DNA from: Antechinus flavipes
Taxonomy: Eukaryota
NCBI RefSeq assembly: GCF_016432865.1
Contig: NC_067400.1
Span: 538,904,001 to 538,968,000 of the forward strand
Direction of reading: 5' to 3'
DNA: 64,000 bases
Below, one piece after another: positions 1 through 62,770 of this stretch (positions are counted from its first letter, which is position 1; every line of letters begins with the position of its first letter). Both the position numbers and the translations under genes were made by a program. The notes beneath the pieces are model-generated. The model saw only the letters and a program-made list of their open reading frames with translations, was not told the origin of the DNA and made no database searches.

Positions 1-119
1 AATCTTTCACAATAAAATTCATAATTTCATAATATCCCATGGGGGGTGCGTGTAATTTGTTTTTAAATGTTCTGCAGAAACTCTTTTCCTAGCAGATAAT
101 TGCAAAACATTTTTTTCAG

Positions 120-590
120 CAAGTGTCTCTGAAAGTCTTCATTTCTCAAATATATGGAGAAACTCAAGTTTATAAAAAATACAAGCTATTTCCCTGATGA
201 TAAATGATCAAAAGATATGAACAGGCAATTCAGATGAAGAAATCAAGTTTATCTATAGTCATACCAAAAATAAATGCTATCAATCACTCTTAATTAGAGA
301 AATGAAAATTAAAACAATTAACCTATTAGATTGATTAAAATGACAGAAAAGGAAAATGATAAATTTTGGAAAGAATTTGAGAAAATTGGAAAACTCTTCA
401 TTATCATTGGAGTTGTAAACTGAACTAAACCATTCTAAAATCCATTTTGGAATTGTAACTTAAGGGCAATGAAATGGTAAAACATCCTTTGATCCAGCAA
501 TACCACTATTAGGCCTGTATCCCAAAAAGATTTTAAAGAGGGGGATGGGGCAGAGAAGACAAATGTGCACCAAAAAATATTTATATTGCC
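120..590 (+). mobile_element. Decayed L1 ORF2 3' fragment
   Basis: aagatatgaacaggcaattc..., gatccagcaataccacta... motifs typical of the marsupial L1 ORF2 end; boundaries approximate. Confidence 0.8.
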
Positions 591-770
591 TCTTTTAGTA
601 GTGGTAAAAAATTGGAAATTGCTAGGATATTTTAACTTTTTTGTGTTTTTTTTTTCCTTTTTAGTCTGTTTATTTTCTATATGTCTAGGATGGAACTATG
701 ATTACACAAACAAAACCCGTATTAAAATCCTTACTATTTTAGGAAGAGAAGAAAAATTTGAAACTCAAAA

Positions 771-1700
771 TTTTGTAAAAAATGAATTTCAAAAATTATC
801 TTTACATATGGAAAAAATAAAATGTTATTTTTAAAAAGTTTATATATATTGTTATTATATCCTGTTAATAATAATTGATACTTCTTTAACAGAAACTTAC
901 TCTTCCCTATGAACTAGAGCCAAACTATCTTTTTAGAAGCCTTTCCAGTTTTGTAAAATGAATTTTAAAAATTATCCTTACATATTGTGGTATATGAACA
1001 TTATGGTATATTATTGTTCCGTAAGAAATGATCAGCAGGATGAATACAGAGAGGATTGGCGAGACTTACATGAACTGATGCTAAGTGAAATGAGCAGAAC
1101 CAGGAGATCATTATATACTTCAACAATGATACTATATGAGAATGTATTCTGATGGAAGTGGATCTCTTCGATAAAGAGATCTAATTCAGTTTCAATTGAT
1201 CAAGGATGGACAGAAGCAGCTACACCCAGCTACACTGGGAAATGAATATAAACTGCTTGCATTTTTGTTTTTCTTCCCGGGTTATTTATACCTTCTGAAT
1301 CCAATTTACCCTGTGCAACAAGAGAACTGTTCGGTTCTGCACACAAATATTGCATCTAGGATATATTGTAACCTATTTAACATGTAAAGGACTGCTTACC
1401 ATCTGGGGGAGGGTTTGGAGGGAGGGAGGGGAAAAATCGGAACAGAAGTGAGTGCAAGGGATAATGTAAAAAGTTACCCTGGCATGGCTTCTGTCAATAA
1501 AAAGTTATTTAAAAATTTAAAAATAAATAAATAAAATAATTATCCTTACATATGGAAAAAATAAAATGTTATTTTTAAAAAGCTTATATATATATTGTTG
1601 TTATATCCTGTTAATAATAATTTATACTTCTTTGGCAGAAACTTACTCTTCTCCATGAACTAGAGTCAAATTACTTTTTAAGAAGCCTTTTCAATTTCCA
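771..1700. repeat. Tandem ~180-bp duplication, second copy split by the L1 insertion
   Basis: Copy 1 ~771-950; copy 2 ~951-985 plus 1555-1700; shared text ttacatatggaaaaaataaaatgttattttt...agaaacttactctt...agaagccttt. Confidence 0.85.
986..1538 (+). mobile_element. 5'-truncated L1 3' end with A-rich tail and 16-bp TSD
   Basis: L1 3'UTR sequence, AATAAA and A-rich tail; TSD aattatccttacatat at 970-985 and 1539-1554. Confidence 0.92.
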
Positions 1701-3010
1701 GACTATCCCTGAAGTCAACCTGATTTTTTGTTTCTGTATCTTTGGTCATGTAACTTCCTAATGGTTGCCATGTTGATTACCTTCATGAATAAACTTTCCT
1801 CACAGTAGGCAACTCATCTTTCTGATCCTCATAAATCTCTATAGCACATAATAGAGAAAGCATGACATCACATTTCTCTGTCTTACTAGTCTCAAACCAG
1901 CTAAATTCTGGGGAAATCCTTACCCAATGAAGTCATTTGTCCTCATTAAATGCATCTAAGTTGCATAACTGTTACTATATTTGTAACAATCTCCTCACAA
2001 GCAATATGAAATTCATTGTTTACCTACCTAACTATAACTTCCTTTTCTGTATAAGGTTGAAAATATGTCTACTACCTGGAAATGCATCAGAAATATGTCT
2101 TTAAGTTCTACAGTCTTCCTCATCTTCATTGCCCTCCATGTGGTCTAAGATTCAGGGACAAGGGCCTCCTTGCTGTTCCTCAAACAGGATCCTTTATCCA
2201 CAGATTCCTTTATCACTGGAATTCCTCCATTGTTAGGAACTCACTCTGTCCTCATCACTGCCAGATGGGTTCCCAACTTTTTTCCAACTCCACTTAAAAT
2301 CCTCCATTCAACAAGGAATATTTCCCCATCTTTTTTTCATATTAGTCCCTTCCTATTATGATATTCAACTTATCTTGTATATATCTTGATCAAATATGCC
2401 TGTTTTCATGTTTTCTTTCTCATTAGTTTAAGTTCCTTGAGGGCTGGAGGTATTTTTTGCCTTTTGATTTCTCTCCACCCATGATTATAGTACTTAAAAT
2501 ATAGGAAAAGATTAATATGTGTTTACTGATGGACTATTATTAGGGAAGATGATGGTGGAAAGATAATTGGAGTCACTCTTTTCCTAGTACTCTTAAGACA
2601 AATTTGTAATCTTTCATACTATTATATTAGCAAATTCTTTGCTGTTCAAAGCTTATTTGTCAAATGAGTCCTATTAAGTCAATCACTCTCTCCCCGAGAC
2701 CTCAACTTTTTCTGCTTTGATTAGTGAGGGACTCTAAGTCTGAGCAACACAGATCAGAAAGCTCAACCAAGAAGACAGAGATAGATGTCACCTCCAGCAA
2801 GAGACAACTTTTAGACCCAGCACTGGATTTCAGATCAAAAAACATTGATTTGATTCAAATTTCTGAACTCTTGTGACACTCTATAAATCTCAATTTTTCT
2901 TGTTTTTCTTATAAGCCTAATAATGATGGGAGCCTTTTAATGAAAATCAATTGAGATTGGGGATATGCAATATATTATTGCGGGAGATAGATACTTACAT
3001 TCCATGCCAC

Positions 3011-3106
3011 AGCCCAGACCAGAGGTCGCTCCTTCTCTTTTAATAGAATTTTCTGAACTATTATACGATTTCTGCTCAAGACTTCTATTTGCCATCGGAT
3101 CTTCTT
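3011..3106 (-). CDS. TRIM-family gene, second coding exon (96-nt coiled-coil exon): KKIRWQIEVLSRNRIIVQKILLKEKERPLVWA
   Basis: Exactly 96 nt, open, phase 0-0, polypyrimidine tgtttcttttacag acceptor and GT donor. A 96-nt exon after the RING/B-box exon is characteristic of TRIM5/TRIM21/TRIM43/TRIM64-type genes. Confidence 0.8.
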
Positions 3107-3378
3107 CTGTAAAAGAAACAGGAATAAATACTGTTAATAAATGTCTTTTCTTAGCCTGAGTTCTGTGACATAGCAGCTATAGTATATAGTTAGTACTATT
3201 TCATTGATTTGTAGGGAAGTCACAGAAGGAAAGATGCTATGTCCCACTCTGACATAGCTGAGTACTCAGATTCAAGAGACAGACTTATGTAGGAACAACT
3301 AAATTGTACATGGAGAAGTCATTGCCAATGATACCCTAAGTCACCTGGAGGAATATCATTGATTTGTGCAGGACTCAC

Positions 3379-3717
3379 CCTGTAGCACAGAGCAGCCACT
3401 GGAATGGGCCAGTGTATGTGATTCTCATGACTTCTTGACTTAGAACAGGTCACACAGAGTAGTGTCTTCTTCCTTTCACAGAATAACTTCAGGTCCTCCC
3501 TGTGTATCTCACACATGCCTTCTCCTTCAGGGTACATGACCATATCAACTCGATTTCTTAGCTGGGAGAATTCCCAGCATATAGTGCAACATAAAGGTGG
3601 AGAGGTATTGTTCCTGAAGCAAGACATACAGATAGTATGTCCACATTCAACTCTGATTAAATTAATGTCTCCTTTCGAGCAATTAATACAGAGACCTTCT
3701 TGTACTTCTTCAGCCAT
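3379..3717 (-). CDS. TRIM-family (RBCC) gene, first coding exon: C3HC4 RING + B-box2 (113 aa)
   Basis: MAEEVQEGL-C10-x2-C13-x11-C25-x-H27-x2-C30-x2-C33-x10-C44-x2-C47 RING; C69-x2-H72-x7-C80...C88-x2-C91-x5-H97-x2-H100 B-box2. Acceptor ctcttcag|GATCATGG (exon starts 3721, strong Kozak) and phase-0 donor AGG|gtgagt at 3378. Confidence 0.88.
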
Positions 3718-4099
3718 GATCCTGAAGAGAAAAAATGAAGCATAGTAAGAATATTTCTACTCCATTGTGGAAGTTTAAAACAAGCACATTTCATGAAACA
3801 CCACAGCAAGCAAAGTAATAATTGATGACACATCTCATAAATTTGGGGCAAAGTCTCCAACAATTATAGACACCATCAGTTGGAAGGATGGCCACAATGT
3901 TGGGTCACCTTGTAGTAACATCTAGTTTTGACCTAGAGTTTGAAGATGTTTCCCATACATTATTCTTTTTGGTCCACACAAAACCCCTATAAAGTACATG
4001 CTATTATCTGCATGGTTGATAGGGAATCTCAAAATAATTATCTAAGTGACTTGTCCAGAGCCACTCAGATACTCCCATTTCCAAGACTAGAAATGTACC

Positions 4100-4718
4100 T
4101 GTGTTGAGGTAATTTTGGTACTCTTACTCAAAACAATCATTATTTATTTGATTTGTTATGATTTGATGAATATCAGCAATTGTATTAGTAAATCAAATAT
4201 GATTAAGTTGTTATTGGGATAAGAATTATGATTAATCCATCATGCATTAATGATTGTATCATATTTATCACCTAGTTTCTTATTAGATAGCAATGTAATC
4301 AGCACATAATTGTTGCATCACTCCCTTCCTTGACTTGGTGACATGCTGTAATAAGATTCATTTGCTTATGCAATAGCCCTCACTATTGTTCACTCCTTAG
4401 TAACTTTTGTTTCAAACCCACAAGTCCCTTAGTCTCTAGGATAGTATAAATCAAACATTGGAGTTTATGACTATTGAAGATCTCATGAATTGTGAAAAGT
4501 CTAGATTTCTCTTAAGATTTCTCCACTTCCAGAACTGATCAAGCAATGAATTGTAATATCTCCTATTTTCATTGCTCTCCCAAGTGTAAAAAAATAGCTA
4601 GCATCCAAGAGAAGGGGTCTTTGATAGTGAGAAAAATCTTGGATTCACTTAATTCAGGATTTCTGGATTCCCCAATAAATTGATTGGGCTTGGAGTTCTC
4701 CATTCCTTTGGTTTCAGA
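4100..4718 (+). mobile_element. Possible solo LTR in intron 1 of the TRIM gene (antisense to it)
   Basis: TG start, internal gtataaaat, AATAAA at ~4675, ends tttca; no TSD confirmed. Confidence 0.35.
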
Positions 4719-5283
4719 TTGGAATTTTCTGGCCTACACTAACTATTCATCACTCAACATTTATTAAGTGCCTACTATGTGGCAAGCAGTGTAACAGAAA
4801 CTTTACAATTCTCATTTGATCAGCCCAATGATCCTGAGAGTTAGGGGATATTATTTCCCTAATTATGCTGCCAAGAAAACTGAAACAAACAGAAGTGAAG
4901 TGACTCACCCAGAATTAAACAGTTAAGTATGTATCTGAGGCTAGATATTGGAATCAGGTCTTCCTGATTCCAGGCCGATTGCTCTACACATTATGCCATT
5001 TGCATAAAAATAATAAATATAATAAGTATTAATAGCAATAAATAGAACATTTGATACAAAGGGAGGGGAAAAAAAGCAAATTTGGAGTCAGAAACTATGT
5101 TCAAATTCTAGTTCTGACACTATCTTTTTGAAGTTGGCCGAGTCATTAAAAAAAAAAATCTCTTCTGGATTCTAATTTCCCTTCATAAATGAGATGATGG
5201 AACTAGATGACCTCTAAGCTTTCCAGCCATACCAGAATTGTAGATCTTCAATAGCAAAGAATTTTCCTCAGAGGGACACTTAC

Positions 5284-5350
5284 CTTGGATATCCTGCCAA
5301 AACTCTGAGCTTCTGGAATCTAGCTTTCCAATGTCTTAAGCCAAAGCAGT
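5284..5350 (-). other. Putative non-coding first exon of the minus-strand TRIM gene (5' end approximate)
   Basis: Ends in consensus donor CCAAG|gtaagt (5283), contains no ATG, starts ~30 nt downstream of a TATA box. Confidence 0.55.
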
Positions 5351-5377
5351 ACACAACACCAGAATGGGATCTGGGGC

Positions 5378-5385
5378 TTATATAT
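5378..5385 (-). promoter_or_regulatory. Candidate TATA box (ATATATAA) of the minus-strand TRIM gene
   Basis: Minus strand reads catatataagcccc, at suitable spacing upstream of the leader exon. Confidence 0.5.
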
Positions 5386-11028: not shown

Positions 11029-11205
11029 ATGCTGTCTGTATTTGCTAGAAAGTTTGCTAGAAGGTTTGTGGTAGGAAATCACTGAATATCATTTTACTTA
11101 TTGTCAAATAAGTAAATCCTGTATTTCAGGAAATGTGTTTGCTTTGAAGCAAATAAAAATAGGGAGTGAAAGAACAATCTTATTCTGTGTCATTGTCTTC
11201 TTCAG

Positions 11206-11565
11206 GCTGAGGGAAGATGAATTTGAAGAGATACAAGAGAGAAATACTACTCGATATGAGTGTCTCTTAGAGACCTCTAAGCAAATCATTCTTGAATGTG
11301 GACACACTGTGTGCAAGAATTGCTCCAGAAAAAACGTTTTGTATCTTCATGTTGTACTATGTGCTCGGAATTCTCCCAGCTCAGAATTCATCAAGTTGAT
11401 ATTGTCATGTACCCTGAAGGAGAAGGCTTTTGTGAGATGCACAGGGAAAACCTGAAGTTTTTCTGTGATACCAACAAGAGTCTACTCTGTGTGACCTGTT
11501 CTAAATCAGAAGATCCTGAGACCCACATACATTGGCCCATTGAAGTGGCTGCTCTCCTTTATAGG
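11206..11565 (+). pseudogene. TRIM-like RING/B-box2 pseudo-exon, paralog of 3379-3717
   Basis: Acceptor ttcttcag| and donor TATAGG|gtaag. 1-nt deletion near 11345 splits ORFs 11135..11455 and 11296..11607; ATG at the homologous position is out of frame; first RING Cys missing; B-box His replaced by Pro (CAT to CCT). B-box half is closely similar to the minus-strand copy (MYPEGEG.CE.HRE.LK.FC....LLCVTCSKS....HIHWPI.VAAL.YR). Confidence 0.82.
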
Positions 11566-11821
11566 GTAAGTCATATTGCAGTCATGGAAATCCCTAGATT
11601 GCTTTGAAGTATTCCTTGGTTGTGACCCTTTCATGTCCATTGTGGTTATTTCTGTATTAATTTATCCCATTGAGCTATTATCATTCTGCTTACTCAGCAA
11701 TCTATCAAAAGAGGTCAAACAGCCACTTTTTCCTGCTGTGATTCTTCCTTAAACATCAGACAGTATTGGTATTTCAGGGCTCATGAATTTCTCAGCCTTT
11801 CACATTGCATGCTCTCAGCCT

Positions 11822-19199: not shown

Positions 19200-19720
19200 C
19201 GGGATGGGATAGTTGGGGAGAGCGAGGCTGGTGTAGCCCACATCGCATAGCAAAGGTTCCCGGTATGGAGGAAAATAAAGCCAGCACAGGTGCTCTTGGC
19301 CATTCCGGGACCGGCTACACAGCTTCCCTGTGCCCTGTGCCAAAGAGGTGCCGCCAAGAGTCACGGCATCTCCGAGCCGCAGCCGCCTGGCAGTCCTCAG
19401 CGCAGTCGCAGTGTGGAGCGGTTTTCTGAGGGAGCCGTGACTGGCAGCTTCAGGGCTTTGAAACGGCTGTGGTGCCATCTTTCAGGCCCAGAAGAAATTC
19501 CCCAACTGGGACGCTGGAATGGAGTCCAGAATACTCTCGGACTGGCAGTGTGGGCTTACGTGCCTGCAGTACTCATTGCTGCAACAAGAACCCCACCAAT
19601 AAGGAAACTGCTCCGCTGGAAGCTGTCATCCAAGAAGTCTGCCGGTTCTTGTTCCAAGGTGCCAACATGAACAAGCTGAATTGGATATCCCCCATGAGGT
19701 GCCACCCCACGGTGGAAGAG
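19200..19720. promoter_or_regulatory. CpG-rich, GC-rich island-like segment
   Basis: About 16 CpGs in 19200-19470 and about 22 by 19720 (hand count), in a window otherwise strongly CpG-depleted. Confidence 0.5.
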
Positions 19721-47400: not shown

Positions 47401-47801
47401 ATGATCTGTCAATCATACTGGCTTTCTGTGTATGTTAACTTCTTAAATGCAATTATTCTGAGACACATGATGCAAGTATTTCTAAAATCAAAGCCTGTGT
47501 TGTATTTCTAAAAAATAAAAATAAAAAGGATGTTGATAAATATGATAGTGTGTGAAAATAAATATCATTCCCAATAATGACTTCTTAGAGAAATCTGTCA
47601 ATATTCATTTCATGTTATAAATGTCACAACAACAATGGGTCATTCTGACCCTAGACTGTTTCAAAGTCAACAAGAAAAAGCTTCTATATTTAACAAACAT
47701 CATATAATGGCATTGTACAATACAACAAAAAACCAGTAAACTTCAACACTGGGAATAAGGATCTAGGTCTTTAACAAGCAATATGGGACTGAGATTTTTA
47801 C

Positions 47802-47925
47802 CTTGAAACTACTGATAGATGAGCACTTCTCAGCTTCTTTCAATGTTTCATTCACCCAATTGACAATAATATCATCATAGACTTTCTGTCCTCCACCAAT
47901 ATCTTCAAGAATACTCAGTGTATAC
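47802..47925 (-). CDS. LCP1: L-plastin exon (~14): [42 protein letters not shown]
   Basis: 124 nt, AG/GT bounded, phase 2 to 0. Confidence 0.97.
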
Positions 47926-47980
47926 CTATTCCCAAAAAAAGAAAAAAACTTTATGTTATCACATAAGAACTCATTACATT

Positions 47981-48125
47981 GGGGCAGATAGGTGGTGCAG
48001 TAGATAGAGCACTATCCCTGAAGTCAGAAGGAGCTGAGTTCAAATCTAGCCTCAGACACTTAACTCTTCCTAGCTGTGAGACCCTGGGCAAGTCACTTAA
48101 CCCCAATTACCTCAGGGAAAAAAAA
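47981..48125 (+). mobile_element. Marsupial CORE-SINE (WSINE1/SINE-1-like)
   Basis: ggggcagataggtggtgcagtagatagagcac...gagttcaaatc...ccccaattacctcag + A tail. Confidence 0.88.
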
Positions 48126-48900
48126 GACATTAAAAAATAATTTATTATGTTAAGTAGAAATAGTAATGATAGTATTTCTTTTTTTTTTTAATCTATCATT
48201 ATTATCATAATAGCAACAACATCATGGCCCAAGAGTAGACACAAAGTACTTTCACTTGCTTTATTTCATTGATATTCATAAGTGGCATTACTATAGATAG
48301 AAATCTAATTATACTCTTTCTGGCTCAGAGGAATACTGTCATATCTGAGGTATTGGAATCACAATGGAGTATTATTGCTTTCTAAGATAATTTTAATTAA
48401 AAGCTTCATTGTTATTATGTCACACAGTACAAATTTCAAAGCTCCCCATCATCTCTCAAGGGGAAAAAAGGAGAGGAGGGAGACAGAAGAAAGCAGAAGA
48501 AGAAAAAGAAAGACCGATGAACAGGGAAGTGTAAATGGAACAAGATTATTCTAGCCAGAGCTACATATTTTACACATAAGTAATGAATTCAAAATAAAAA
48601 TCAGTAACAAAAGCAGAAAATAACTAAAAGCTGAAAGATCGGGTGGACCAGAATAATTGGGGAAAACATTTAAATAGTTTTATCCCAGAGAAGAAAAATT
48701 AACACGAAAACATTTTTTCAAGCAAAAGAAACATTCAAAAGGAAAATGTTAAGAAACTTTTAGGCAGCTAGGTGGCACAATGGACAGAATGCCTGGGCTG
48801 GAGTCAGGAAGACTCCTGTTCCTGAGTTCAAAAGTGAGTTCAGATATTAGCAAGCCAAATCCTGGGCAATTTACTTAATTGCTTAATCCTGGGCAATTTC

Positions 48901-49029
48901 TTTTTTTTTTTTTCTTTCCTGAGGCAATTGGGGTTAAGTGACTTGTCCAGGGTCACATAGTTTAGGAAGTTTTAAGTGTCTGAAATCAGATTTGAACTCA
49001 GGTCCTCCTGAATTCAGGGCTGGTGCTCT
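48901..49029 (-). mobile_element. 5'-truncated WSINE1-like SINE inserted into an older MIR-like SINE, 15-bp TSD
   Basis: TSD atcctgggcaatttc at 48886-48900 and 49030-49044. Confidence 0.85.
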
Positions 49030-49617
49030 ATCCTGGGCAATTTCTTTAGCTCTGTAAAATGAGTTAAAGAAGGAAATGGTAAAAAGCCATTCCAGTACCT
49101 TTGCCAAGAAAACCATAAAAGTTAGGGTTGACTGAACAAAGAAAAGAATTTCTGGTCCCAAAGACTGAACTAGAATAAATCATACCCTTCTGCATAATGT
49201 CACAAAAACTGTCTTGCCTCAGAAATTTCATGGCATATTCTATATGTCTTTGAGTTTATATCCTCAAAAGAGTTTACTCAATAATAATAATATTTTTTGT
49301 TTCCTTTTTTATGCCTACTTACATCTCAGTCCAATACAATTAACATTACCTTAAATTTCTAGGTTATAGAAATAATGGGATTAGACTCAATAACTTTTGA
49401 GATCTCTTTCAATTCTAGAACTAAAATCCCATACAAGTTTAGATTTGACTCCTAAAGGCATCTAGTGATGTCTTCCATTACTGAAAATCACCTTTTGTTG
49501 AGTTTGGCCTACCAGTTAGGCGAAATCCTATTCTTGGTTGCTGAAGTTACTTAGCTCTAAAATGTAGTGACATGTGTCTATTAGCTGGGTAACCAATTTA
49601 TCCAACATAACTAATAC

Positions 49618-49751
49618 CTTCTCATTAACTGCCAAATTAAGGCTAATGTCAATGTGCGGTTTCCTTCATTGAGATCCTGTCCAGCAATGCCAACAAGAGA
49701 AAACTTGGCTTGGTTCTTCCCCAGTTCCACAGCATAGTTACAGTTCTCAAG
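49618..49751 (-). CDS. LCP1: L-plastin exon (~13): [44 protein letters not shown]
   Basis: 134 nt, AG/GT bounded, phase 0 to 2. Confidence 0.97.
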
Positions 49752-50806
49752 CTGTTAATGATCAAACAGAAAAATGATTTAGTATTGTCATCTTCATATG
49801 AAATTTCCATTATAAAGCACATGGGTATAACAGATGATGGATATAATACAAAACTCATTTTTTTTCAAAGTACTAGCCTTTATTCTTAACTCCTCTGAAT
49901 ACTCTTCCCCAGACAGAATAAAGGAATCTATTATCAACATTTTCTATGACTTTTCTTAAATCTGAACCTCTGTTATCATAAATGTAAAGAACTCCCAAGA
50001 ATTAAAAACTCCTTCAATGAAGAAGATGGCAATTTGGCTCTAATTAATAAATTTAAGAGAATTGCCTGAGGTCAAGTGACTCATTGATGGTCACATGGGT
50101 AGTATGTAGAGAGACAGGATTTGAACTTCAGTGTTCCTGATTCCAATGCAGATTCTTTCTCCACTATGCCATGCTACTTCTTATGATGAATAATGTCTAT
50201 CCAGATAGATAGAAAAAAAAAATTAGGGGAAGGCAATTGGAGTCAAATGACTTGCCTAAGGTCACACAGGGTGGGTCTGAGGATGGGTTTAAATTCAGCT
50301 TCTCCTAACTGTAGGGCTAGCACTCTATCCACTGGGCCATCTAGTTGCTCCAAGCAGAAAGTTTTTGTTTTGAAGGTTGAAATCCATTTTCTTGGACTAA
50401 GGAATGAATATGATAAGTAGCCTAGATTTGTATCTCTAGGGGTCTGATTCTATGGTGCAGTGTTGTTGTGGTGTTGTTTGGTTGTTCTAAGAGAACTATA
50501 ACATAAGGGAAATAATCCTATGACAAATAAGTGAATTGGATTTTAAGTGAGGGAGGACTGTGTAAGGTCACCTACCTCACTTTCTTTTCTAGAGTCCTGT
50601 AGGGTGGCAAGATGTAGATCAGAATGACTAAAGATGACCCTGGATGCAAAAGGAAACCTTGACCTCTTTTAAGTTAAGGTCTTTAAATAAGTCTCAGTTT
50701 AACTGAGGCAACATCCATTCATTCAGTGATTAAGGCTAGGTAAGAAATGAGGCAGAGCATGGTCTCTTTTATCTAGTCAAATAGCTTTTCTTTCTCTTTT
50801 CCTCTC

Positions 50807-50939
50807 NNNNNNNNNNNNNNNNNNNNNNNNNNNNNNNNNNNNNNNNNNNNNNNNNNNNNNNNNNNNNNNNNNNNNNNNNNNNNNNNNNNNNNNNNNNNNN
50901 NNNNNNNNNNNNNNNNNNNNNNNNNNNNNNNNNNNNNNN
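50807..50939. other. Assembly gap (133 N) in an LCP1 intron
   Basis: N run flanked by CT-rich and CA/TA-rich simple sequence. Confidence 1.
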
Positions 50940-52008
50940 TGCACAATACACATATACATGTGTTTGTATGTATGTGTGTGTATTTGTATATTAATCTGTG
51001 AGGAAAAGAACCTCTAGAATTTCTGGTCAAAACAGAAAAAAAATGCTGTTTATATTTAATCCTATCAAGACCCAAACAATGACTAAGTGGGACCTATTAT
51101 TGATCATAACTATAATTCATCTCAATATTTTTATTACTCCAACAGTTACCAAATGTTCTACATAGTAGATGCTTAATGATATTTTTAAAAATAAATGTGT
51201 CAGCTAAGTCTTTCTTGATCAATGGAAATAGTCTCCAAATTTTCCTGCCTGATGATGGCATCATACTCTAAAGAAAGGGGAAAGGAATGCCTACTATGTG
51301 CCAAGTACTTGCCACTTTAATCTGATTTAAACCCCCAAAGTGCTATTATTCTCTCCATTTTAGAGATTAAGTAAGTTGCCCATGATCAAGCTAGTAAGTG
51401 TCTGAGGTCAAATTTGAAATAGCTTCCCGAGTTCAGGCCCAGTGCTCTATCCTTGCTACCTAACAGGAGAAGTCATTACTACCAAGTTAAAGTTTTTTAA
51501 AAGTGTCTGAATTGAGAGCATAACGCCTTGGAAAGCAGAAACATTTAATAAATCTTTCCCTGGAATTGAATGACCAGTTTGTAGATGTGTACATCATGTG
51601 CCAGATGATCAGACTTGTCTCTCTGGGTGAAAATGGTGACAAGTGTTTGAAATATAACTCATATCAAGAATTTTTCACATTTTCTTACATTCATACTGTA
51701 CTTGAACTGCAAAACTACAGCAAATTCATCAAAGCATTGAGTATTATTGCCCTCTACCACACCTTGATAGCGATTCAACCTTCATTAATTAATTGTTCAA
51801 CAGATCCCTTGAATGGCTGAGTTTATGGCAATTCACATGGACAGTTTGAATTTCTCATATTCCAGGCCCATATCAGACTGCCAAACCTACCTGGGGCTAC
51901 ATAATATCTAGAACTTTGGTACCTGATGTGATTCATGGCAACAAATTGTAGCTCTTAATGTGGACATTAGACCTATTTGCCCAAATAAGCCATCGACACA
52001 AAAAGAGA

Positions 52009-52010
<2 letters not shown>

Positions 52011-52064
<54 letters not shown>

Positions 52065-52201
52065 GGCTGAGGCAATTGAGGTTAAGTGACTTGCGTAGGG
52101 TCATACAGCTAGGAAGTATTAAGTGTCTGAAGTCAGATTTGAATTCAGATCCTCCTACTTCAGGGGCTGGTACTGTATCCACTGTGCCATCTAGCTGCCC
52201 C
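52011..52201 (-). mobile_element. WSINE1-like SINE with (GA)n tail, seen as (CT)n at 52011-52060
   Basis: ttttggctgaggcaattgaggttaagtgact...ctagctgcccc preceded by ~25 CT units. Confidence 0.88.
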
Positions 52202-52527
52202 AAGAGAATCTCTTTTGCAAGGTATAGTGGAGACCTAGACAATCTATAGGAGCTGTAGGAATATGGCATTGTCTTCTCTAATAAACTCAATCAGAATATT
52301 CACATTCAGTGTTTTTGGTAAACTAATATTTAATTGTAAAGAGGTTATTACCTAAAATAACAGGGACACTTTAAGGGGGAAAAAAAAGCTGCTCTAGTTT
52401 CTGATCTTTGTGTTTTTGTGTAAATGTTACTTATTTGAGCTTGGCCTCCTGATAAATTATTCACACAGTGTTTGGCAAGGTTATTCCTGCATTAGCCTAT
52501 TTGAGTCTGGCAATGGTATTTGCCTAC

Positions 52528-52642
52528 CTTCTTCATGTTACCCCCCAGTTTAGGGTATGGCGGTTTGTTCACTCGATTCCAGTCCACAGGTACTTTAATC
52601 TTTTCATAGAGCTGGAAGATGACCAATGAGTCTGACAAATCA
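52528..52642 (-). CDS. LCP1: L-plastin exon (~12): [38 protein letters not shown]
   Basis: 115 nt, AG/GT bounded, phase 2 to 0. Confidence 0.97.
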
Positions 52643-52974
52643 CTAAAAGAAAAAAAAATACTCATATATCGCCTCATGTAAACCTCATATAAGCCACACA
52701 TCTTTTACAGAACAAAGCAAAGAAGAGTCATTTTCCATAGGAAGTAACACAGAGAAGCTTAGAGCTTGTAGACTGCTCTTTTCAAGGTAGATTTACTAAG
52801 AAGTAGTGACCCAAATTTTAATTACAATCTATGCTATTGAATATTTTTTCCCCAAAAAGGAAAGGAAGAGAAAGATGTAAGATCATGAAGAACTGTGACA
52901 TATCTACTAGGAGCTTTGATTGCAGATCAAATCAGTGGGTTGACATATCCCTGGTTTATGTCAGAGAAGGCATG

Positions 52975-52975
<1 letters not shown>

Positions 52976-53013
<38 letters not shown>
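52976..53013 (+). repeat. (AAC)n microsatellite
   Basis: About 12 AAC units. Confidence 0.95.
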
Positions 53014-53014
<1 letters not shown>

Positions 53015-53711
53015 GCTTCTTTTAAAAAAAATCTGTTCATTTAGTAATGCAAAAAAGCCATACTTATAACTGCATTTTTATGATACTTTGAAATTTACAG
53101 AGCTCTTTCCTATGCAAGGATCCCTATATTTATAGATAAAGAAACTGAGGCTAAAAAGGTTGAGTTTTGTTCTCAAGGTCACATAAAAGAATGACATAGT
53201 AAACAGTTATTCAAAATATCTAATTCCAAATCCAGTCCTTTTCCTGCTACCACCAATGGTTAGAACAAATCAGTGTGATACATACTGAAGCTACTAATAG
53301 GGCTAATAGAGGATATGTGGAAAGCTGGCTACTTGGCCTACTGTAATTGAGAACTAAAAAAAAGACCCTTAACCCAACTTAACCATAGATCCCTGTTTTG
53401 CATTTAAATCTAAATAGCCAGCTCAATTTCCCAAAGAACTCTTATCATAATTTTTCTTTTCTTAAAGCAGCCCCAAGAAATCTATTAATCTATGGATATG
53501 GATGCTGTCCTGTTGGTCTCACCATGTTGTCTATCCTCAGAAAATAAGGTGGGTGTGGCCATATACTTCTTGTGTCTGTTATTATTTGGAGTGACTGGAT
53601 GAGAATAAAAGACAAAAGCTGAATTCTTTTTGTGCTTCAAGATAGGGAAAACCATACTTGAAGATATCTCTTTTTAAGGTGTTTCTAGGCCAAACTTCCA
53701 TGTCTCCTTAC

Positions 53712-53790
53712 CTGTATAAATGATTGACTCGAGGACTCACACCCAAGGAATTCATCCAGTTCCTAAATGTACGCTCCTCCCTGGTCTCAC
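53712..53790 (-). CDS. LCP1: L-plastin exon (~11): [27 protein letters not shown]
   Basis: 79 nt, tttag acceptor and gtaag donor, phase 1 to 2. Confidence 0.97.
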
Positions 53791-55339
53791 CTAAAACAAC
53801 AGAGGACAACCAGTTATTAAAGAAATGTGTAGAAAACATGTTATCCTTATAATCAGAATAGACAGAGACTTTAAAAAAATTCCAAATGGAGTGAGAAAGC
53901 AGCTGACAAGAGGGACTAATAGTAATGAGCCTTGATTTCAGCTGTTATCACTGACCAATTCCAATTAGTTAAATCTTTCTTCCTCCCCCACCATGTATGT
54001 GCCCAATACAGTGCTGGGCATGATGAAGAATACAAAAGACACCAGAGGCCTTGTGCTCAAGGACTAGTGGTCTAATCAGAGAGATAAGACGGCTGTGCAC
54101 AAAAGAGAAAACAGTTTAAGACAAATATAATTACTAAGTGACCAAATGCGTGATATAGATAGTAAGTGCTAAGGGAGATGAGAAAGAGAGAAACAAGTGT
54201 GGGTCATCTTTATAGGAAAGATAGCATAGAGGAATATGTTTGAGCAAGGACTTTAAATACTCATGAGATAGATCTCTTTGGGTTGCTTTTTTTTGGTGTT
54301 TTTTTTGGGGGGGAGGCTTTGTTAATGGGGGAAGAGGAAGTCCAGGAGGTAGAGAGAAATGGGGAAGGTGTTGCAGTCCAGGGAAAAAGTGTGAACAAAG
54401 GCATGACAATGGAAATGAACATAGCATCTGTTAAAAGATACTAATTCAATAGACATCTTAAGATTCCTTACCTGGAATCAGAAAGATCTGAATTCAAATT
54501 TGACCTCAGCTACTTAATAACTGTGTGATTCTGGGCAAGTCACTTAACTCTATTTGTCTCAGTTTCCTCATCTGTAAAATGAGCTGGAGAAGGAAATGGC
54601 AAACAGCTGCAGTGTATTTAACAAGACAACTTCAAATGAGGTAATGACATGTCAAATGAATCACAACTGAAACAACTTGAACACATTAAATTTAGAAGAA
54701 GAATGGCTAAAACATCTTGCCCATGGAAACTTCCATTAAGTCCCTTAATATCTATTTTTTAATGCAATGTTTTATTTCATTTAATAGTGAGATGAAGATG
54801 TTGATGTTTCATCTGAAAATAAGATGCTGTCCCAGTCATTTTAGTTGCATCTGACTCTTCATGACCCCAATTTGGGATTTCCTTGCCAAAAGTATTGGAA
54901 TGGTTTGCCATTTCTATCTTTGGTTCATTTTCAGATAAAGAAACTGAGGCAAGTGGGATTAATTAATCTGCCCACGGTCACACGGTAAGTAAGTATCTGA
55001 GGCTAGAATTGAACTCAGAAAGATGAGTCTTTCTGACTCCAGATCTGGCACTCTATTCACTGATAGTGGGATGAGCATTGCTTTTTTGAAAGCATTGAAT
55101 CCTGATAATGGGTGAAAACTATATATAATGGATGGGATATAAGAGTAGTTGGTTATTTCTTCTTGATTATAATTGATATGACTTATCTGTTTATTCAATT
55201 TTTTTCTTTATGCCAAGAAACTTAAGTGCTCACCAATGTGTTCTGTTATGTTTGTAATCATTTATGAATTACAAACTGAACAGCTATCCTATGTGTTTTG
55301 ATTTTTCCTAACATCTTGATATAATCAGTTAAGAGTTAC

Positions 55340-55535
55340 CTTCAAAAGATCCCCAATCAATATCTTGGTTCTCTGGTTTATGTAAGGCAGGGTATCTGTT
55401 GAAGAGATTGGCAATGAAAGCCAAGTTCAACTTGGGGTTCCCACGGACAACATCTGTGGCGGTGACAAATTGCCGGCATCCCAGTCTTTCTGCTTGTTGC
55501 AACATACATTCTGCCCTCTGGATGTCATCCTTCTC
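55340..55535 (-). CDS. LCP1: L-plastin exon (~10): [65 protein letters not shown]
   Basis: 196 nt, AG/GT bounded; ORF 55329..55544 covers it. Confidence 0.98.
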
Positions 55536-56246
55536 CTGCATCAATTTAGACAGATCTCAAATCTTGGTCAAAGGACCATAAGTCTTGAAGTTATAGATAT
55601 AATATAAAAATTAACACTAGGTTTACTTATATCCTGGTATTTTCCCATGGAAACTACACCACATTATTAGCATTTTATTTATAACTTTTATTTGCCTGAA
55701 ATCAATACCCAAGATATAAATCTAAAAGAGATCTTAAAAAGATTAACTCTAGAACTGGAATTTTATCTAAATGAATTATAGATAGGTACCTGTCCTTTAA
55801 AAAAAAAACTTCCGAGACAATTCACAAGTTCTTATAGTAGAATCTAATACATAATTAAATGTATCAGGTATTTTTAGAAGATGCCTCATTATTCAATTTT
55901 GGACAGATTATATAAAATAAGTTTATAAAATTGTTTAAAAATCAGTTAAAATTCTACAAGAATAAGAATTCCTTTTTACTTTGGGACTTACATAATATAT
56001 AACATAATAGCAATAATAGCTTATTATATAGCACTCTAAAAGTTTGCAAAGAACATTGTATACACTTCTCATTTGAGCCCTATAACAACCCTGTGAGGGA
56101 GATACAAATGAAAAACCTAATGCTCACTAATAAAGGGCCTTACCTCAAGATTATATAGATATTAAGTTTTAGAGTGAGAATTTGAATTTTGGCTCTCCAG
56201 TCTTCAAGTCCCACATTCTTTCTAGTATACTGTATAGTCCCTTAGA

Positions 56247-56264
56247 CTATATATATCTATATCT

Positions 56265-56295
<31 letters not shown>

Positions 56296-56297
56296 TA
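56247..56297 (+). repeat. (ATATCT)n/(TA)n microsatellite
   Basis: ctatatatatctatatctatatctatatctatatctatatatatatatatac. Confidence 0.9.
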
Positions 56298-56676
56298 CAT
56301 AATACGAAGTATATTCATATTACCCAAATGTTTTCTTACTCATCAGTTACTCAACCAGTGCTTAGCATATAGTAGTTACTTAATAATGTTTACTGACTGA
56401 TCAATTCTTTTCATTTGCCAGGCAATTGGGATTAGGTGATTTGTAAGTATTAAGTGTCTGAAGCCACATTTGAACTCAGGTCCTCCTGACTTCAAGATCA
56501 GTTCTCTATCCACTGCTCCATTCAGCTAATCCAACTGATCAATTCTTTAACTCTTATATCTTGTTTTTTAAGAGTAAGAATTCCTTAACACCAATCCCAT
56601 TCAGTGAGGCACAGAAAAAGAGTGATCTTTGAACTTTAAGGTCTTACTAAGAGAGAGTTTATATGTCCATTCTTAC

Positions 56677-56772
56677 CCTTATTCCTGACATGTCAATAGT
56701 AATAGCTGGAATACCTTCTTCATCTCCTTTTGGAGCCACCTGTTCAAGCAGGTGGAAATAAGCTTTGGAGTC
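56677..56772 (-). CDS. LCP1: L-plastin exon (~9): [32 protein letters not shown]
   Basis: 96 nt, tttcag acceptor and gtaag donor, phase 0 to 0. Confidence 0.97.
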
Positions 56773-57003
56773 CTGAAAGAAAGCAAGAAATTACATCTTA
56801 AAATAATGCAATAACTACAGGTGTGCTATGACAGTATTTCCCAATAGCAAGCATGCTTTATTTCTGATTCAGTAAATATTCAAGATTAGAATTTCATTAA
56901 CAAAACTAGAAACAATTTTACTAATTTGCATATTATGGCTTATTATATAATTTCACTTCAATAACTTCTATTCAAAAGCAATTAAAAAAAACTTTAAATT
57001 ACA

Positions 57004-57035
<32 letters not shown>

Positions 57036-59227
57036 ACAACCATATGCTACCATTGTTGCCATTTAAGAGGTTACAGTTAATTTATATGTATTAAGTTGTA
57101 TGCATGAAAAATATATACCTTTAAAATGCTGTAGAAGTCAGTCAGCTAAGGATTAAACAAAAGACATGACAGGAGGAAACAGAAGAGTTCAAAGAAACAT
57201 TAAATGGACACTAAGCAAAACAGAAGAAAGTCAGAGATAGAAGTTGAAGCAATCAGCAAGCATTCTTTAGGACTAAAGGGGAGAGTAAAATAGTGCATGC
57301 AGTAAATTCTTGGCTAGACCTTTTGAACTCACAAATCCAGAAATAAAAGCCAAATTAATTCTATCTTACAGAATAGTGACAGCAATTTGAGTTTATGGAT
57401 GGTATTTTCACTATCCTTAATATTCTGGAAAATGTCTCATCCAGGAGAAGAATTTTAAGAATTTTAATCTTTTGAAAGTATTTTCTTATTTTTACATGTA
57501 AAATAGAGATTAGAGGGGAAAGGGAGAGGGATAATTTAAATTCTCTAAAAGCAGATTAAGTGATCATATGTATTTTAGATAAAAACAGTTATAGAGATAG
57601 TGTTTTCTACTTATTAAATCAGAATAATAGTATAGTGTTATTCATTTCTCTTATTAACCTACACTGGGAAAAAGTGATTTTCAATCCCTGTCACACCATC
57701 AGACCTAACCTCAATCTTTCGGCTTGACTTTTTTTGACAGTCTCTTTGGGGGTATTGTCAAGGCAGTTCAGTATGAATAGATAATAAAGTCCAAATTCTA
57801 AAAACAGGGCTTAGTTATATTATATGCCATAACATTTCTTGCCACTTCGGTTATATTCAGAGTCCCAGGAAAAAAACAGAAATAGCCAAATCACCAGATG
57901 CCACATAAAGCTCCCAGAGACTAATATGAACTCTACAAACAGAATGACTGTCTGCTGTCTCCATAAATGTTGATTTTATGTGATTTAGAGTACATATTTC
58001 TTTTAATGTTGCCATCAAAAAGAGAATTTGCATCAATATATCAATATTACTGTACTTTTAAAAATGATTCTTATCTCCTATAGAAACTTTTCAAACTCTC
58101 AAGTGGTTACAACTCTGAAAGAGCTGAATAATTCTATTGAATAGAAATCAGTTTAATTTGTGTTTCTAAACACAAATAATCAAGTAGCTTAATTTTGATT
58201 GAGAAAAGATGTAACAATTTAGGAAGGCTGAATTGCTAATGGAATTTGTGATTCAGTCATTACAATCATGTCCAATTTTTCATGACCCCACTTGGGATTT
58301 TCTTGGCAAAGAATTTTGGAGCCATTTGCCCTTTCCTTCTCTAGATCAATTTATAGAAGAGGAAACTGAGGCAAACAATATTAAGTGACTTACCCAGAGT
58401 CACACAGCTAGTTAACATCTGAAACAGGATTCATACTCAGGTCTTTCTGATTCCAAATATTGCTATCTGTTGTACCACCTAACTGACTTTAGTTAGGTGG
58501 GAATATGAACTTGAGGCTATTAATAGATATACCAAGCAAATAGGAAGCTTTCTATAAGGAAGCATCCCTGTAACTAGAACACTATGGAAAAACCAATAAG
58601 AGAAGCTAAGGCTTCAGCAATGTAAAGAATCATACCAATTATCTAGCTCACAGCATACTTAGTGCATAAAGCAGATACTTTATTGGAACACCTAATTTAC
58701 AGAATCCCAAGGATGGAAAGTATCTTGAAGGTGTGTAAACCTTGTCTCTGTTTATTAGCTTATCTTCAAACTATCTATCCCTGAGTAAAGCTTTTAGTCT
58801 CTTGAGCAAAAGACAACCACTTTTCTTGTAATGCAATTAAATGTACCATATTTTTTTTAATTACAATGAGAAATTACTTTCTGCTGTCTAACAAAAATTT
58901 CTTTCATCCTATCTCTGCCTTTCCCCACATCTTGATTTGTTCTCGACCAGAAAAAAAAACAGCTGTTGTTTCTCACTAATGTATCTTCTTTCTGTATGTT
59001 TAAAAATAGCAATTATGCCTTCTTTGCGGGGTGTCTGAAACTGATAACTGAGATTTTAGTAGGAAAACTCTTATTCAGGAGAAGAGTTCTCAGATTTACT
59101 ATATCTGAAATTCATAAAATTTTTCATATGTAGAAAATAAGTACATTTTCACAAAATCTTCACTATAAAAACAAAAACAAAACATTTTTGTTCTTAAATT
59201 CTTCAAAGAAAAATGAGTTTTGTTCAT

Positions 59228-59372
59228 TTTTTTCCCCTGAGGCAATTGGGGTTATGTGAATTGCCCAGGGTCACACAGCTAGGATGTGTTAAGTGTCTGA
59301 GACCAGATTTGAACTTAGATCCTCCTGGACTTCAGGGCTAGTTCTCTAATCACTGCACCATCTAGCTGCCCC
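59228..59372 (-). mobile_element. WSINE1-like SINE
   Basis: ttttttcccctgaggcaattgggg...catctagctgcccc. Confidence 0.88.
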
Positions 59373-60039
59373 CTTGATCATTTTTTTAAAATTTTTTAAA
59401 TTTTTAAAAATTTTTTAAATTATTATTTTTTTTAGGACTCAAAGATATTTTACTTTATTATTTATAGAAAACAAAACAAAACAAAACCCACAGGTCCAGA
59501 TACATCAGGTTAACAGCAGGTGCAATTTTTGGTTCACATTTCTAAAAATTGGCTTCAAACAAGACAGCTCTTTGGCAGTCCACTATTTCTATCCCCTTTG
59601 TTAATATCATTTTTGCTTACATTCCCTACCCCCCTACCCCAAGTTAACATTTATATTATCTACTTAAGAAAACAAGATAAACCAAGAATGATGCATTGTG
59701 GACTTTGCCATATACTTCAAGTGAAAATTGCTCCTTGTTAGAGCAACACATATCATTTGATCATTTTTTTAAAAGAAAAGTATTCACCAATGATGAAATT
59801 AGAAAGATAGCAGTCATATCTATAGTATAACCTGCTCCTGCAAAAAATGACATTTGTTTCTTTTTCCTTTATATTCTCTTCTTCCTTTGTTTTACCTACT
59901 GAGCTCCAGTAATTGCTAACTGATGTACATAAGACTTTTAAAATATGTATAACACAGTCACTAGAGCCTTGGAGATGCCTCCTCAGACCCAGGAGTGATA
60001 ATTTCACCAAATCCAAAAGCCTATAGGCCAAAGTTCTTA

Positions 60040-60236
60040 AACCTGAAGCTTGTGGAGATATTTCAGGGGATCCATGAACTGATATGAGGGGGAAAAGTTA
60101 TACTCTTATTTTTCACTTACTTTTAATCAAAATTCATCACTCCCTTAAATTTTAAATATTTTTCTAAAGGGTCCATAGGCTTCACCAGATTGCCAAAAGG
60201 GTCCATGACACAAAAAAAGGTTAAGATCTCCTGCTA
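60040..60236. mobile_element. Old hAT/Charlie-type MITE remnant
   Basis: agttcttaaacctg...ggggatccatgaac...gtccatgacacaaaaaaaggttaagatctcctg. Confidence 0.5.
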
Positions 60237-60335
60237 TAGCCAGATCTAAAGAACAGTATCTAGGTGGAACTTCAACCAGTCCTAACACCTTCCCTCCAAT
60301 ACTAGTCAAATTGAATTCAACTGCATTCTTCCTAC

Positions 60336-60478
60336 CTTGATGTCAGTACTGAAGTTGTTGATTTTATTGCAGCCTGAATTTTCCAGGTGATAATTTGCCC
60401 ATCTCAGCAATAGGTCCTCGGGGGAAAGTTTCATCAAATCCTCCAGACTCTCACCTTCCCTCAAAAGGGCAATCAGAG
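60336..60478 (-). CDS. LCP1: L-plastin exon (~8): [48 protein letters not shown]
   Basis: 143 nt, AG/GT bounded, phase 1 to 0; not in the ORF track, read manually. Confidence 0.97.
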
Positions 60479-62604
60479 CTAGACAAATAAAAAAGTGAAA
60501 AGGAAAAAAATAAATCCGAGGTGCATATTGAAATTGGCCATGTCTTCTATCAATATAATCTATGGAATTAATCTGAAGAAGGAATTAATAGTCCTTTAAC
60601 CTCTCTGGGTTGGGTTCATCATCTGTAAAATGAGGCAGTTGAAAAAAAAATGTCTTCTAAGGTCCCTTCTAGTTCTAACATTCTAATTCTATGACTTGTC
60701 CACATGGTATCATACTGATTGGCCAAATTTTCTTTTTTTTTTTTCCTTCATAGTCAAACTCCTTAAAAAGAAATTGAGGAAGGGAAAAGACAGACTAAAA
60801 CTCTGTGGAGGTGTAATGGAAGATTCCAATTAGATTTAACACAAGATCCCCATAGTTCTTTCTCCCTATTAATCTCATCTCAGCTAATATTCCCTGTGTC
60901 CCTGCAAGGAAAATGGATGGAAGGCATAATGGCTTTATTTGTTATTCTCTAATTTAAAGTAAAACAATTGAGGCAAACAAAGAAGTTAAGTGAGCTATTC
61001 AAGATCCCAATGGTACAAACTAGAAATATATCACTCATATTAAAATCCACTCTGTGTTCACTAAATCATGTTTCCTGATAAGATATTTACTTTTCAGAAA
61101 TCAATTAGATAACAATGACAATATAACTGTTTCTTTTCAATTCTCAGAGATATTTTAGAATTCAAATGCTTGTATAATTAAAACATCCCACCAACATAAT
61201 CTATTCTCCTTTCCACTTCCAGAAGAAAAGGTTTTGTTTAGATGCAGACTTATTTTAGAATCTGCCATTTTCAAACCAAAATTTTTATGCCACAGTTTCT
61301 AAGATTTATATTGGCTCTTTTCCTCCTTTAAAAACATTAACTATAAAGAAATATCACAAGAATACAATATATATGAATTGAGAACATGTAAAGTTCTCTG
61401 TGCTGATTATTACAGTTATAAAATAAGATATAAAAGACATCATGGGACACTCCACAGACTATCACAATTCAAAGACAGAAGTGACATATCTGGCTAAATA
61501 GAAGTCAAATAAAAGTTACATTTCAAGTCCTAGTCATATCTGTATATGAAATAAAGCTTTTAGATTTTGAAAACTGAATGTATTCACAATCATTTAATTA
61601 TGCTCTTATTTTACATATGAGAAAAATGAGGCTCATAAAGATGAAATGGCTTGTTCAAGATCTCATAGCTAAATCAGTGGCAGACCCAGAATTAGAAATC
61701 AAGTTTCTGGAACCCAATCCAGGGGCCTTTCTATTACAGTCTTGTGTTGTGTGGTATTTAGTACCTACCTGTGAGATTGGAATATTGTTAAGTTTGTATG
61801 CGAATGGAAAGGCTTTGTTGTAGCAGGTGTTTAAACTTACATCAGTACTTTCTTATGAATTGTAAATCTGACATGTGACTTGTATTCTGCTTAACACATG
61901 AAAATTTCTTCAAGAATCTACATTTCTAGATGGGGATAATTCTGTATAAATTCAAGCACAAAGTAATCTACAATGTTCAATTATTATATTGGGTGGAAGT
62001 GGCACAACAGATAAGAGTGCTAGGCTTGGAGTCAGAAAGACTCCTCTTAATGAGTTCAAATATGGCCTCAGACCCTTGCTAGCTTATGTGATCCTGAGAA
62101 AGTGACTTAACCCTGTTTGTCTCGATTTCCTCATCTGTAAAAGGAGCTGGAGAAAGAAATGGCAAGACACTCCACTATCTCTGTCAAGAAAATCTCAAAT
62201 GAGGATCATAAAGAGTCAGATATGATTGAAATAACTGAACAGACAAATATTCTATTATCTAGCTCTAAAATGAGCTATCTGAGGAAAGGTTTTTGAGGCT
62301 GAAGTCCCAGACAGCTGAAGTAAGTTTCAAGTTCCATTTAAATAGGCTTCACCAGCCTGTGGTATTAAGAAGCTTTCACTTTCTTATTTTAAGAAGTCTG
62401 ATTATTATGGGAAAGAAGAGAAATGACAAAATATTGAGTTTCATCTGCTGTGTCAAGTAGAGAGCTCAGTATTAATTTACATATACTTTATTCAAGTCAT
62501 CTTTAAAAATCTGAACCTGCATATCCACATCATTCTCTACTTCATCAAAATATATGCATTAATAGAAGGTTATCCCAGAAAATAATAGGCTTTAGCCTCT
62601 GTAC

Positions 62605-62770
62605 CTTCATTTCTGCTGAGTTCAATATCGGCAAACAATCCAATTTTGATGACTTGCCACAAAAGGCCCAAGACCAGATAAGGTTTTCCCTCTTTTAAGT
62701 CCTCAGCTCCTATGTTAACAACATGGCACCCAATGGCTGAAGCGGAGTTCAGAGCCAGGTTCAAATTCTC
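62605..62770 (-). CDS. LCP1: L-plastin coding exon (~exon 7 by human numbering), CH1: [55 protein letters not shown]
   Basis: Translation matches L-plastin; cag acceptor at 62771-62773, gt donor at 62603-62604; 166 nt (phase 0 to 1). Upstream exons lie beyond the window end. Confidence 0.97.

Follow-up and report, generated by a model that had tools for sequence, protein, structure and literature searches.

Probable 5' half of a member of a marsupial-specific TRIM family clustered near LCP1 in Antechinus flavipes

TRIM genes are a classic substrate on which lineage-specific innovation acts, both in early development and in innate immunity. In a canonical gene of the TRIM5 type, exon 3 consists of 96 nucleotides (nt) and exon 4 of 231 nt, and the members of the TRIM43 group carry a PRY/SPRY domain. 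The locus analysed here lies in a 64,000-nt stretch of the genome of Antechinus flavipes (NCBI RefSeq assembly GCF_016432865.1, contig NC_067400.1, positions 538,904,001 to 538,968,000 of the forward strand), referred to below as the window, in which a preliminary description had recognised an apparently intact, highly divergent TRIM gene. The segment 2999-5385 of the window, read on the minus strand, was interpreted, with a probability of about 0.75, as the half nearest the promoter of a single copy from a TRIM family that is specific to marsupials and located in a cluster near LCP1.

The 113-amino-acid (aa) product of exon 2, which encodes the RING pattern and the B-box2, was compared with 1.84 billion representative proteins by an exhaustive HMMER scan, and family members were matched with E-values from 5e-66 to 1e-24. 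The best matches were three gene models of the devil, Sarcophilus harrisii, that were 89-91% identical over all 113 residues (XP_031817306.1, named 'TRIM17-like', and XP_031817302.1 and XP_031817301.1, both named 'TRIM43-like'), followed by proteins of Dromiciops, koala, Gracilinanus, Monodelphis and Macrotis at 49-67% identity; a clear named ortholog was not found among them. A search with a family profile of 14 sequences retrieved 21 marsupial proteins at E<=1e-93 and added Notamacropus, Trichosurus, Sminthopsis and A. flavipes itself, and the next matches were reptile TRIM41-like and RFP-like proteins at E of about 1e-16. The family was found in opossums, Dromiciops, bilby, diprotodonts and dasyurids, that is, in every marsupial order sampled. 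The nearest named non-marsupial matches of the exon 2 product were platypus TRIM11-like, echidna TRIML1 and RFP-, TRIM7-, TRIM39- and TRIM41-like proteins of reptiles, amphibians and fish, and no eutherian protein was present among the non-family matches whose names were looked up. A word-indexed search of short proteins (62-198 aa) with the same 113-aa query returned zero matches.

Within the family, the labels assigned by NCBI were TRIM43-, 49D-, 51-, 64-, 17-, 15- and 11-like, TRIML1, TRIML2 and nestin-like. Because these labels conflict, they were regarded only as best-hit names, as expected of a family without an ortholog, and the earlier view of a divergent TRIM without a named ortholog was borne out, all strong relatives (E<=1e-93) being marsupial proteins with mutually inconsistent names. 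The expectation of a lineage-specific gene held in the sense that the family is confined to marsupials; it did not hold in the sense of a one-off novelty, given a family spread over several orders with annotated devil homologs at 89-91% identity. In the protein tree, the window copy was placed inside the devil trio with support of 100/99, and the family was split from the reptile outgroups with the same support (100/99). A literature search retrieved no paper on this TRIM family, and a paper on TRIML2 concerned other genes. Judged by its sequence, the window copy is a member, un-annotated or un-modelled, of a TRIM family that is restricted to marsupials and has homologs publicly annotated under conflicting names.

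The exon plan of the window copy was read on the minus strand (slashes within sequences indicate exon boundaries). A TATA-like box (ATATATAA), found by direct reading at 5385-5378 and identical across the three devil paralog loci, lies about 25-30 nt 5' of the presumed transcription start and marks a putative promoter. It is followed by a putative non-coding leader exon (5284-5352, 5' end unmapped) with the donor CCAAG/GTAAGT at 5284/5283; the 94 nt that connect the TATA box with this donor contained no ATG on minus-strand reading and script indexing, and the leader was 91-97% identical to those of the devil copies, which retained the GT donor. Intron 1 (3722-5283, 1562 nt) contains an element resembling a short interspersed nuclear element (SINE), ends at a strong acceptor (TTTTTTCTCTTCAG/G) and aligns colinearly to the devil loci, with an identity of about 87-92%. 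Exon 2 (3379-3721) starts its 113 codons at an ATG at 3717 in the context GATCATGG and ends at the donor CAGG/GTGAGT (3379/3378). Intron 2 (3107-3378, 272 nt) has splice sites common to the devil copies. Exon 3 (2999-3106, 108 nt, phase 0) opens with ACAG/AAGAAG, encodes 36 codons (KKIRWQ...PLVWAVAWN) at the start of the coiled coil and ends at the donor AAT/GTAAGT. The 5' part of intron 3 (1-2998) contains L1-derived fragments. A direct repeat of about 185 nt was also observed in this intron at 767-951 and 1511-1697, the two units being 81-86% identical and placed around an L1-like segment of about 560 nt. As a separate matter, the idea that the promoter and leader represent a repeat or a shared family promoter was rejected, no second copy being found in the window or in the loci of two other family members, P0013 of A. 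flavipes and P0165 of the devil.

The TATA box, the ATG-free leader, the 1.56-kb intron 1, the strong start context and the 272-nt intron 2 of the preliminary description were all read at this locus. Its 96-nt exon 3 was confirmed as open and in phase 0 and was corrected in length. Devil proteins aligned by tblastn covered the region 3109-2999 at 76-89% identity, and the exon end ...GTCTGGGCTGTGGCATGGAAT/GTAAGT was common to all four copies (window and three devil); exon 3 was therefore taken to be 108 nt long with its end at 2999, in agreement with the devil models XP_031817301 and XP_031817302. The end at 3011 proposed earlier is 12 nt short and would use a weak donor (GCT/GTGGCA). With the 108-nt exon 3, the spliced product within the window increases from 145 aa to 149 aa, which would be the N-terminal portion of a protein with a predicted length of about 346 aa.

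In the exon 2 product, the eight RING ligands occur in C3HC4 order and spacing (C10, C13, C25, H27, C30, C33, C44 and C47), and the residues C69, H72, C80, C88, C91, H97 and H100 show the spacing of a B-box2. The B-box was detected by Pfam PF00643 at residues 66-105 (32.9 bits vs a cut-off of 24.1, E=7.3e-8). Among structures in the PDB, the best match was the B-box of TRIM41 (E=6.9e-8), and TRIM21 RING-B-box (5olm), TRIM72, TRIM39 and TRIM5 were also matched; the neighbours obtained with a protein language model belonged to RING/B-box TRIM clusters throughout. All zinc ligands were kept across the family alignment, and none of the eight residue changes specific to the window copy was at a zinc ligand. 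The RING is atypical, with short loops, and since all RING models of Pfam scored below the cut-off, the RING call rests on the ligand pattern and on the match to the TRIM21 RING-B-box structure. Of the 'complete C3HC4 RING and a B-box2' described earlier, the B-box2 was thus recovered above the Pfam cut-off, and the RING was recovered as a ligand pattern with a Pfam score below it. The coiled coil is represented inside the window by its first 36 residues, encoded by exon 3.

The three devil genes are located within 200 kb (LR735556.1, 517.75-517.95 Mb), and a fourth family gene, P0165, lies beside them at 517.69 Mb. The window was colinear with each of the three devil loci (L001, L002 and L003) over 8-12 kb. 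Frame, splice sites, start context, TATA box and leader donor of the window copy were shared by the three devil paralogs. Expectations for insertions and deletions (indels) were derived from the flanking non-coding DNA, which showed 9-14 gap events per kb; in the 447 coding nt, zero indels were found in any pair of the four copies, whereas 4-6 were expected (P=0.002-0.015 per pair). The coding exons of the window copy contained neither stop codons nor indels. Among the devil paralogs, the ratio of non-synonymous to synonymous substitution (omega) was 0.25-0.44 over 298 codons (Fisher p from 4e-7 to 4e-3), which indicates purifying selection, and the branches of L001 and L003 evolved more slowly in exons than in non-coding sequence (p=0.02 and 0.04). 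The earlier label 'fast-evolving' was moderately true, omega being 0.43-0.59 for the window copy and 0.25-0.44 among the devil paralogs.

Substitution divergence was 7.0-8.3% between the window and the devil copies and 7.5-9.1% between one devil copy and another. An orthologous pair of loci, that of A. flavipes P0013 (L005) and that of devil P0165 (L006), showed 6.5% mismatches per aligned column. Since the distances between the window and the devil copies are close to that of the orthologous pair, they fit an interspecies comparison, and the duplications would have occurred approximately at, or slightly before, the split of Antechinus and Sarcophilus. Quartet-informative sites grouped the window with L003, the locus of the XP_031817306 gene (45 vs 20 vs 20, binomial p=2e-4), and the same pairing was obtained in the protein tree (support 98/82). 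In L003, the exon 3 donor is GC instead of GT (AAT/GCAAGT at 10719/10720), and for this reason the NCBI model probably skips exon 3 and has an aberrant C-terminus. In L001 (10001-11170 and 11077-11946), the model XP_031817301 has a 126-aa N-terminal extension that is derived from exons about 17 kb upstream, and these exons overlap, on the opposite strand, with sequences that also match the unusual C-termini of the two remaining devil models. These features suggest that the devil gene models are chimeric products of the annotation pipeline.

Exons 4-7 had no homolog anywhere in the window when ten family proteins were used in tblastn. Window positions 1-951 had a counterpart in all three devil loci, about 1.35 kb on the upstream side of exon 4; in L001, they matched 31480-30549, and exon 4 of that paralog begins at 32837. 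From this colinearity, exon 4, if present, would be expected about 1.35 kb beyond window position 1. By analogy with the closest paralogs, the full gene would have seven exons and encode about 346 aa. The exons of the devil paralog L001 were 339+, 108, 282 and 23 nt, followed by two further exons, and the 23-nt exon (GATGTGGCAGAAACATTGGAAAG) is flanked by AG and GT. The exon plan of class-IV TRIM genes was therefore recognised in two parts, as the leader, the RING and B-box exon and the phase-0 108-nt exon in the window, and as the 282-nt and 23-nt exons in devil L001.

In the family alignment, the RING was short and ended in CW[EK][FY]SQL, the linker was MYPEGEG, the B-box2 ended in HxxHxHWPI.VAA, exon 3 had a tryptophan-rich end with a W.V.W motif, the coiled coil ended in KP[DN]xxxLQD, and the tail of complete members, about 100 aa long, was conserved. 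No match to PF13765 or PF00622 at E<=1 was obtained in six full-length relatives of the window copy, and hhalign aligned the family to an SPRY-bearing RFP-like TRIM with a probability of 99%, the alignment stopping at the end of the coiled coil. The exon layout of PRY-SPRY-class TRIMs noted in the preliminary description thus applied to the gene structure, and the PRY/SPRY domain itself was undetected in the family tails; a PRY/SPRY remnant in the tail was likewise considered and was unsupported by Pfam or hhalign. An AlphaFold2 model of a full-length member (mean pLDDT 66) contained the zinc modules, two long helices (111-144 and 196-245) separated by a small insert, and a tail in which one helix is accompanied by three short strands, with a small sheet at the C-terminus. 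Foldseek searches with this model gave the TRIM5 B-box/coiled coil, TRIM21 and TRIM72 as the best matches, all weak (best E=1.6e-3).

From these comparisons, the predicted protein would combine a divergent RING of the C3HC4 type and a B-box2 with a long, insert-bearing coiled coil, and would end in a tail of about 100 aa without a detectable PRY/SPRY. It would be expected to function as a RING E3 ubiquitin ligase and to dimerise through the coiled coil, and further assembly via the B-box2 may occur. Because no SPRY is detectable, target choice would rest on the short tail or on the coiled-coil insert.

The window copy would belong to a multi-copy subfamily of dasyurids in which every copy has a decaying partner exon in head-to-head orientation. 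In the window, this partner (copy B) is a RING/B-box pseudogene exon at 11205-11567 on the plus strand that has no in-frame ATG and has lost the first two RING cysteines, and in which a 1-nt deletion splits the RING and B-box frames. Head-to-head pairing with copy B was found in the window and in two devil units. In devil L002 (about 2593-3048, minus strand), copy B has one open frame with no start codon, and in L003 it is largely deleted. Copy B and exon 2 share 80% identity along about 290 nt, beyond which BLAST gave no alignment of the flanks; since only this exon sequence aligns, the inverted duplication would be much older than the duplications of the units.

Several results weigh against the interpretation of the segment as half of a gene of this family. 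The window contains exons 1-3 only, that is, the 5' half; the earlier wording 'apparently intact gene' was therefore an overstatement, and we give even odds to the window copy being complete and active. A protein model with the window exon was absent from the searched collection, although this collection includes A. flavipes proteins, among them P0013 of the sister subfamily, and the public annotation of A. flavipes does not seem to call the gene protein-coding. The best RING model of Pfam reached E=0.005 and 17 bits vs a cut-off of 27, the residue directly after the last RING cysteine is Trp, and RING E3 ligase activity is an activity that we infer. Pairwise omega between the window and the devil copies (0.43-0.59) was significant only against L002 (p=0.03), and on the window branch the exons had 12 private changes in 447 nt compared with 110 in 4086 nt of non-coding sequence (p=1.0), so that the two rates were equal. 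Six sequencing runs of unclear kind (about 3-4 Gb each, from three organisms) contained 32-49% of the words drawn from a stretch that is mostly intron, which points to DNA sequenced at low coverage rather than to mRNA, and they gave no support for expression. A Logan protein, P0007, was also considered as support for splicing and was rejected. Its source, L004 (contig SRR23565335_23277, open reading frame 461-1042), joins exons 2 and 3 without an intron, contains two in-frame TGA codons that the gene caller translated as Trp, becomes A-rich at the 3' end and has a 5' flank of genomic appearance; judged by these features, L004 derives from a family member of a distant marsupial, either as the transcript of a pseudogene or as a retrocopy.

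The strongest rival explanation, to which we assign somewhat less than even odds, is that the window copy is a recently relaxed or dead paralog, either a young pseudogene or a 5' gene fragment, that has acquired neither a stop codon nor a frameshift yet. The equal rates on the window branch (2.7% each in exons and non-coding sequence) are what this explanation predicts, and the lack of a protein model agrees with it. For the window branch alone, about 2 indels would be expected, so that the probability of none is about 0.1, and the probability of no stop among 12 substitutions is estimated at about 0.6; an unbroken 447-nt frame would thus be no great surprise under neutrality. Birth and death are also seen elsewhere in the family, copy B being decayed in the window and deleted in one devil unit, and the exon 3 donor of one devil gene being GC. 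The opposite is indicated by the zinc ligands, the donors and acceptors of the coding exons, the start context, the TATA box and the leader donor, all of which are intact in the window copy. The 12 exon changes of the window branch comprised 8 non-synonymous and 4 synonymous changes, and this singleton ratio of 8:4 corresponds to an omega of about 0.5 instead of 1, the counts being small. In the three devil paralogs, exons 2-4 and 7 are open and under purifying selection. Taken together, these observations fit a live, fast-evolving copy as well as a recently relaxed one.

For the family, an antiviral or germline/embryo role is a guess made by analogy. A broader proposal, in which the PRY/SPRY of a marsupial TRIM family was replaced by the conserved tail of about 100 aa, the window copy is active, and the amplification reflects either a germline/embryo role parallel to that of TRIM43/49/64/77 or an arms race, was considered rather unlikely. 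Less probable still is the explanation that the window gene stands in an orthologous or co-orthologous relation to the eutherian cleavage-stage embryo genes TRIM43/49/51/64/77 and has the same role. Many family members have been automatically named TRIM43-, 49D-, 51- or 64-like by NCBI, an Atlas cluster named 'TRIM43-like' was among the neighbours of a full-length member with a weak score of 0.81, and the gene structure is of the class-IV type. Other members, however, are named TRIM17-, 15- or 11-like, TRIML1/2 or nestin-like, which identifies such names as best-hit labels; neither a eutherian protein nor one of the TRIM43 group was present among the named non-family matches, PRY/SPRY is undetectable in the family, and the LCP1 neighbourhood is not among the known locations of the human TRIM43 and TRIM49/64/77 clusters.

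It is equally improbable that the window gene restricts viruses or retroelements in the manner of TRIM5/22 and was amplified in a dasyurid arms race. Consistent with this idea, the subfamily comprises several copies that arose by recent duplication, the N-terminal exons show a moderately high omega (0.43-0.59), and the best structural matches are to the B-box/coiled coil of TRIM5. The SPRY, which is the capsid-binding domain in TRIM5, is undetectable in the family, however, and omega in the devil paralogs is well under 1 across the whole coding sequence. A chance open reading frame was ruled out by the homologs in the HMMER scan together with the indel-free coding sequence.

Elsewhere in the window, open frames on the minus strand at 47766-63016 were recognised by eye as exons that we take to be of the plastin/LCP1 type, and by this identification they lie upstream of the TRIM gene and share its strand. 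Both strands carry long open frames in a GC-rich island at 19200-19600 (59% GC, against 25-35% in its surroundings), which is a candidate CpG-island promoter located between LCP1 and the TRIM pair. At 50807-50939, the sequence consists of 133 N, either an assembly gap or masked bases.

The gain from the window by itself is small and consists of the curated exon structure of one paralog. The family-level observation of an SPRY-less, marsupial-only and apparently unstudied group of TRIMs is of greater interest. If the family is active, it would represent an independent expansion of SPRY-less TRIMs in marsupials, with targets and expression that could be set against those of the eutherian TRIM43/49/64/77 or TRIM5/22 expansions, and its inconsistently auto-named gene models would deserve a single family name.

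Compared with its closest described relatives, the window copy shares with the devil trio 89-91% identity in the RING/B-box exon, 76-89% in exon 3, the splice sites, the TATA box and the leader, and it differs from them by 7.0-8.3% nucleotide divergence and by eight private residue changes; the devil gene models have differing and partly aberrant C-termini produced by the pipeline, and exons 4-7 could be checked in the devil. The wider family (Dromiciops XP_043849653, Monodelphis XP_007495512, Trichosurus, Notamacropus, Macrotis and A. flavipes 'TRIML2' P0013) has the same architecture as the window product but only 45-67% identity to it and falls into other subclades of the tree. With the class-IV TRIMs (TRIM21, TRIM5 and TRIM11/17/27(RFP)/39/41), the family has in common the RING ligand pattern, the B-box2, the predicted coiled coil, the single exon for RING and B-box, the short phase-0 exon, the long coiled-coil exon and the 23-nt exon, whereas its tail is without a detectable PRY/SPRY, its RING is shorter and below the Pfam thresholds, and identity is about 25-35%; compared with the sizes in the canonical TRIM5-type gene, exon 3 has 108 nt here and exon 4 has 282 nt in the devil paralog. 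The TRIM43/49/51/64/77 group resembles the family in being made up of lineage-restricted, tandemly amplified and divergent TRIMs, none of the sequence comparisons made here ranked that group closest to the marsupial family, and the marsupial family differs from it in being SPRY-less and in occupying another chromosomal neighbourhood.

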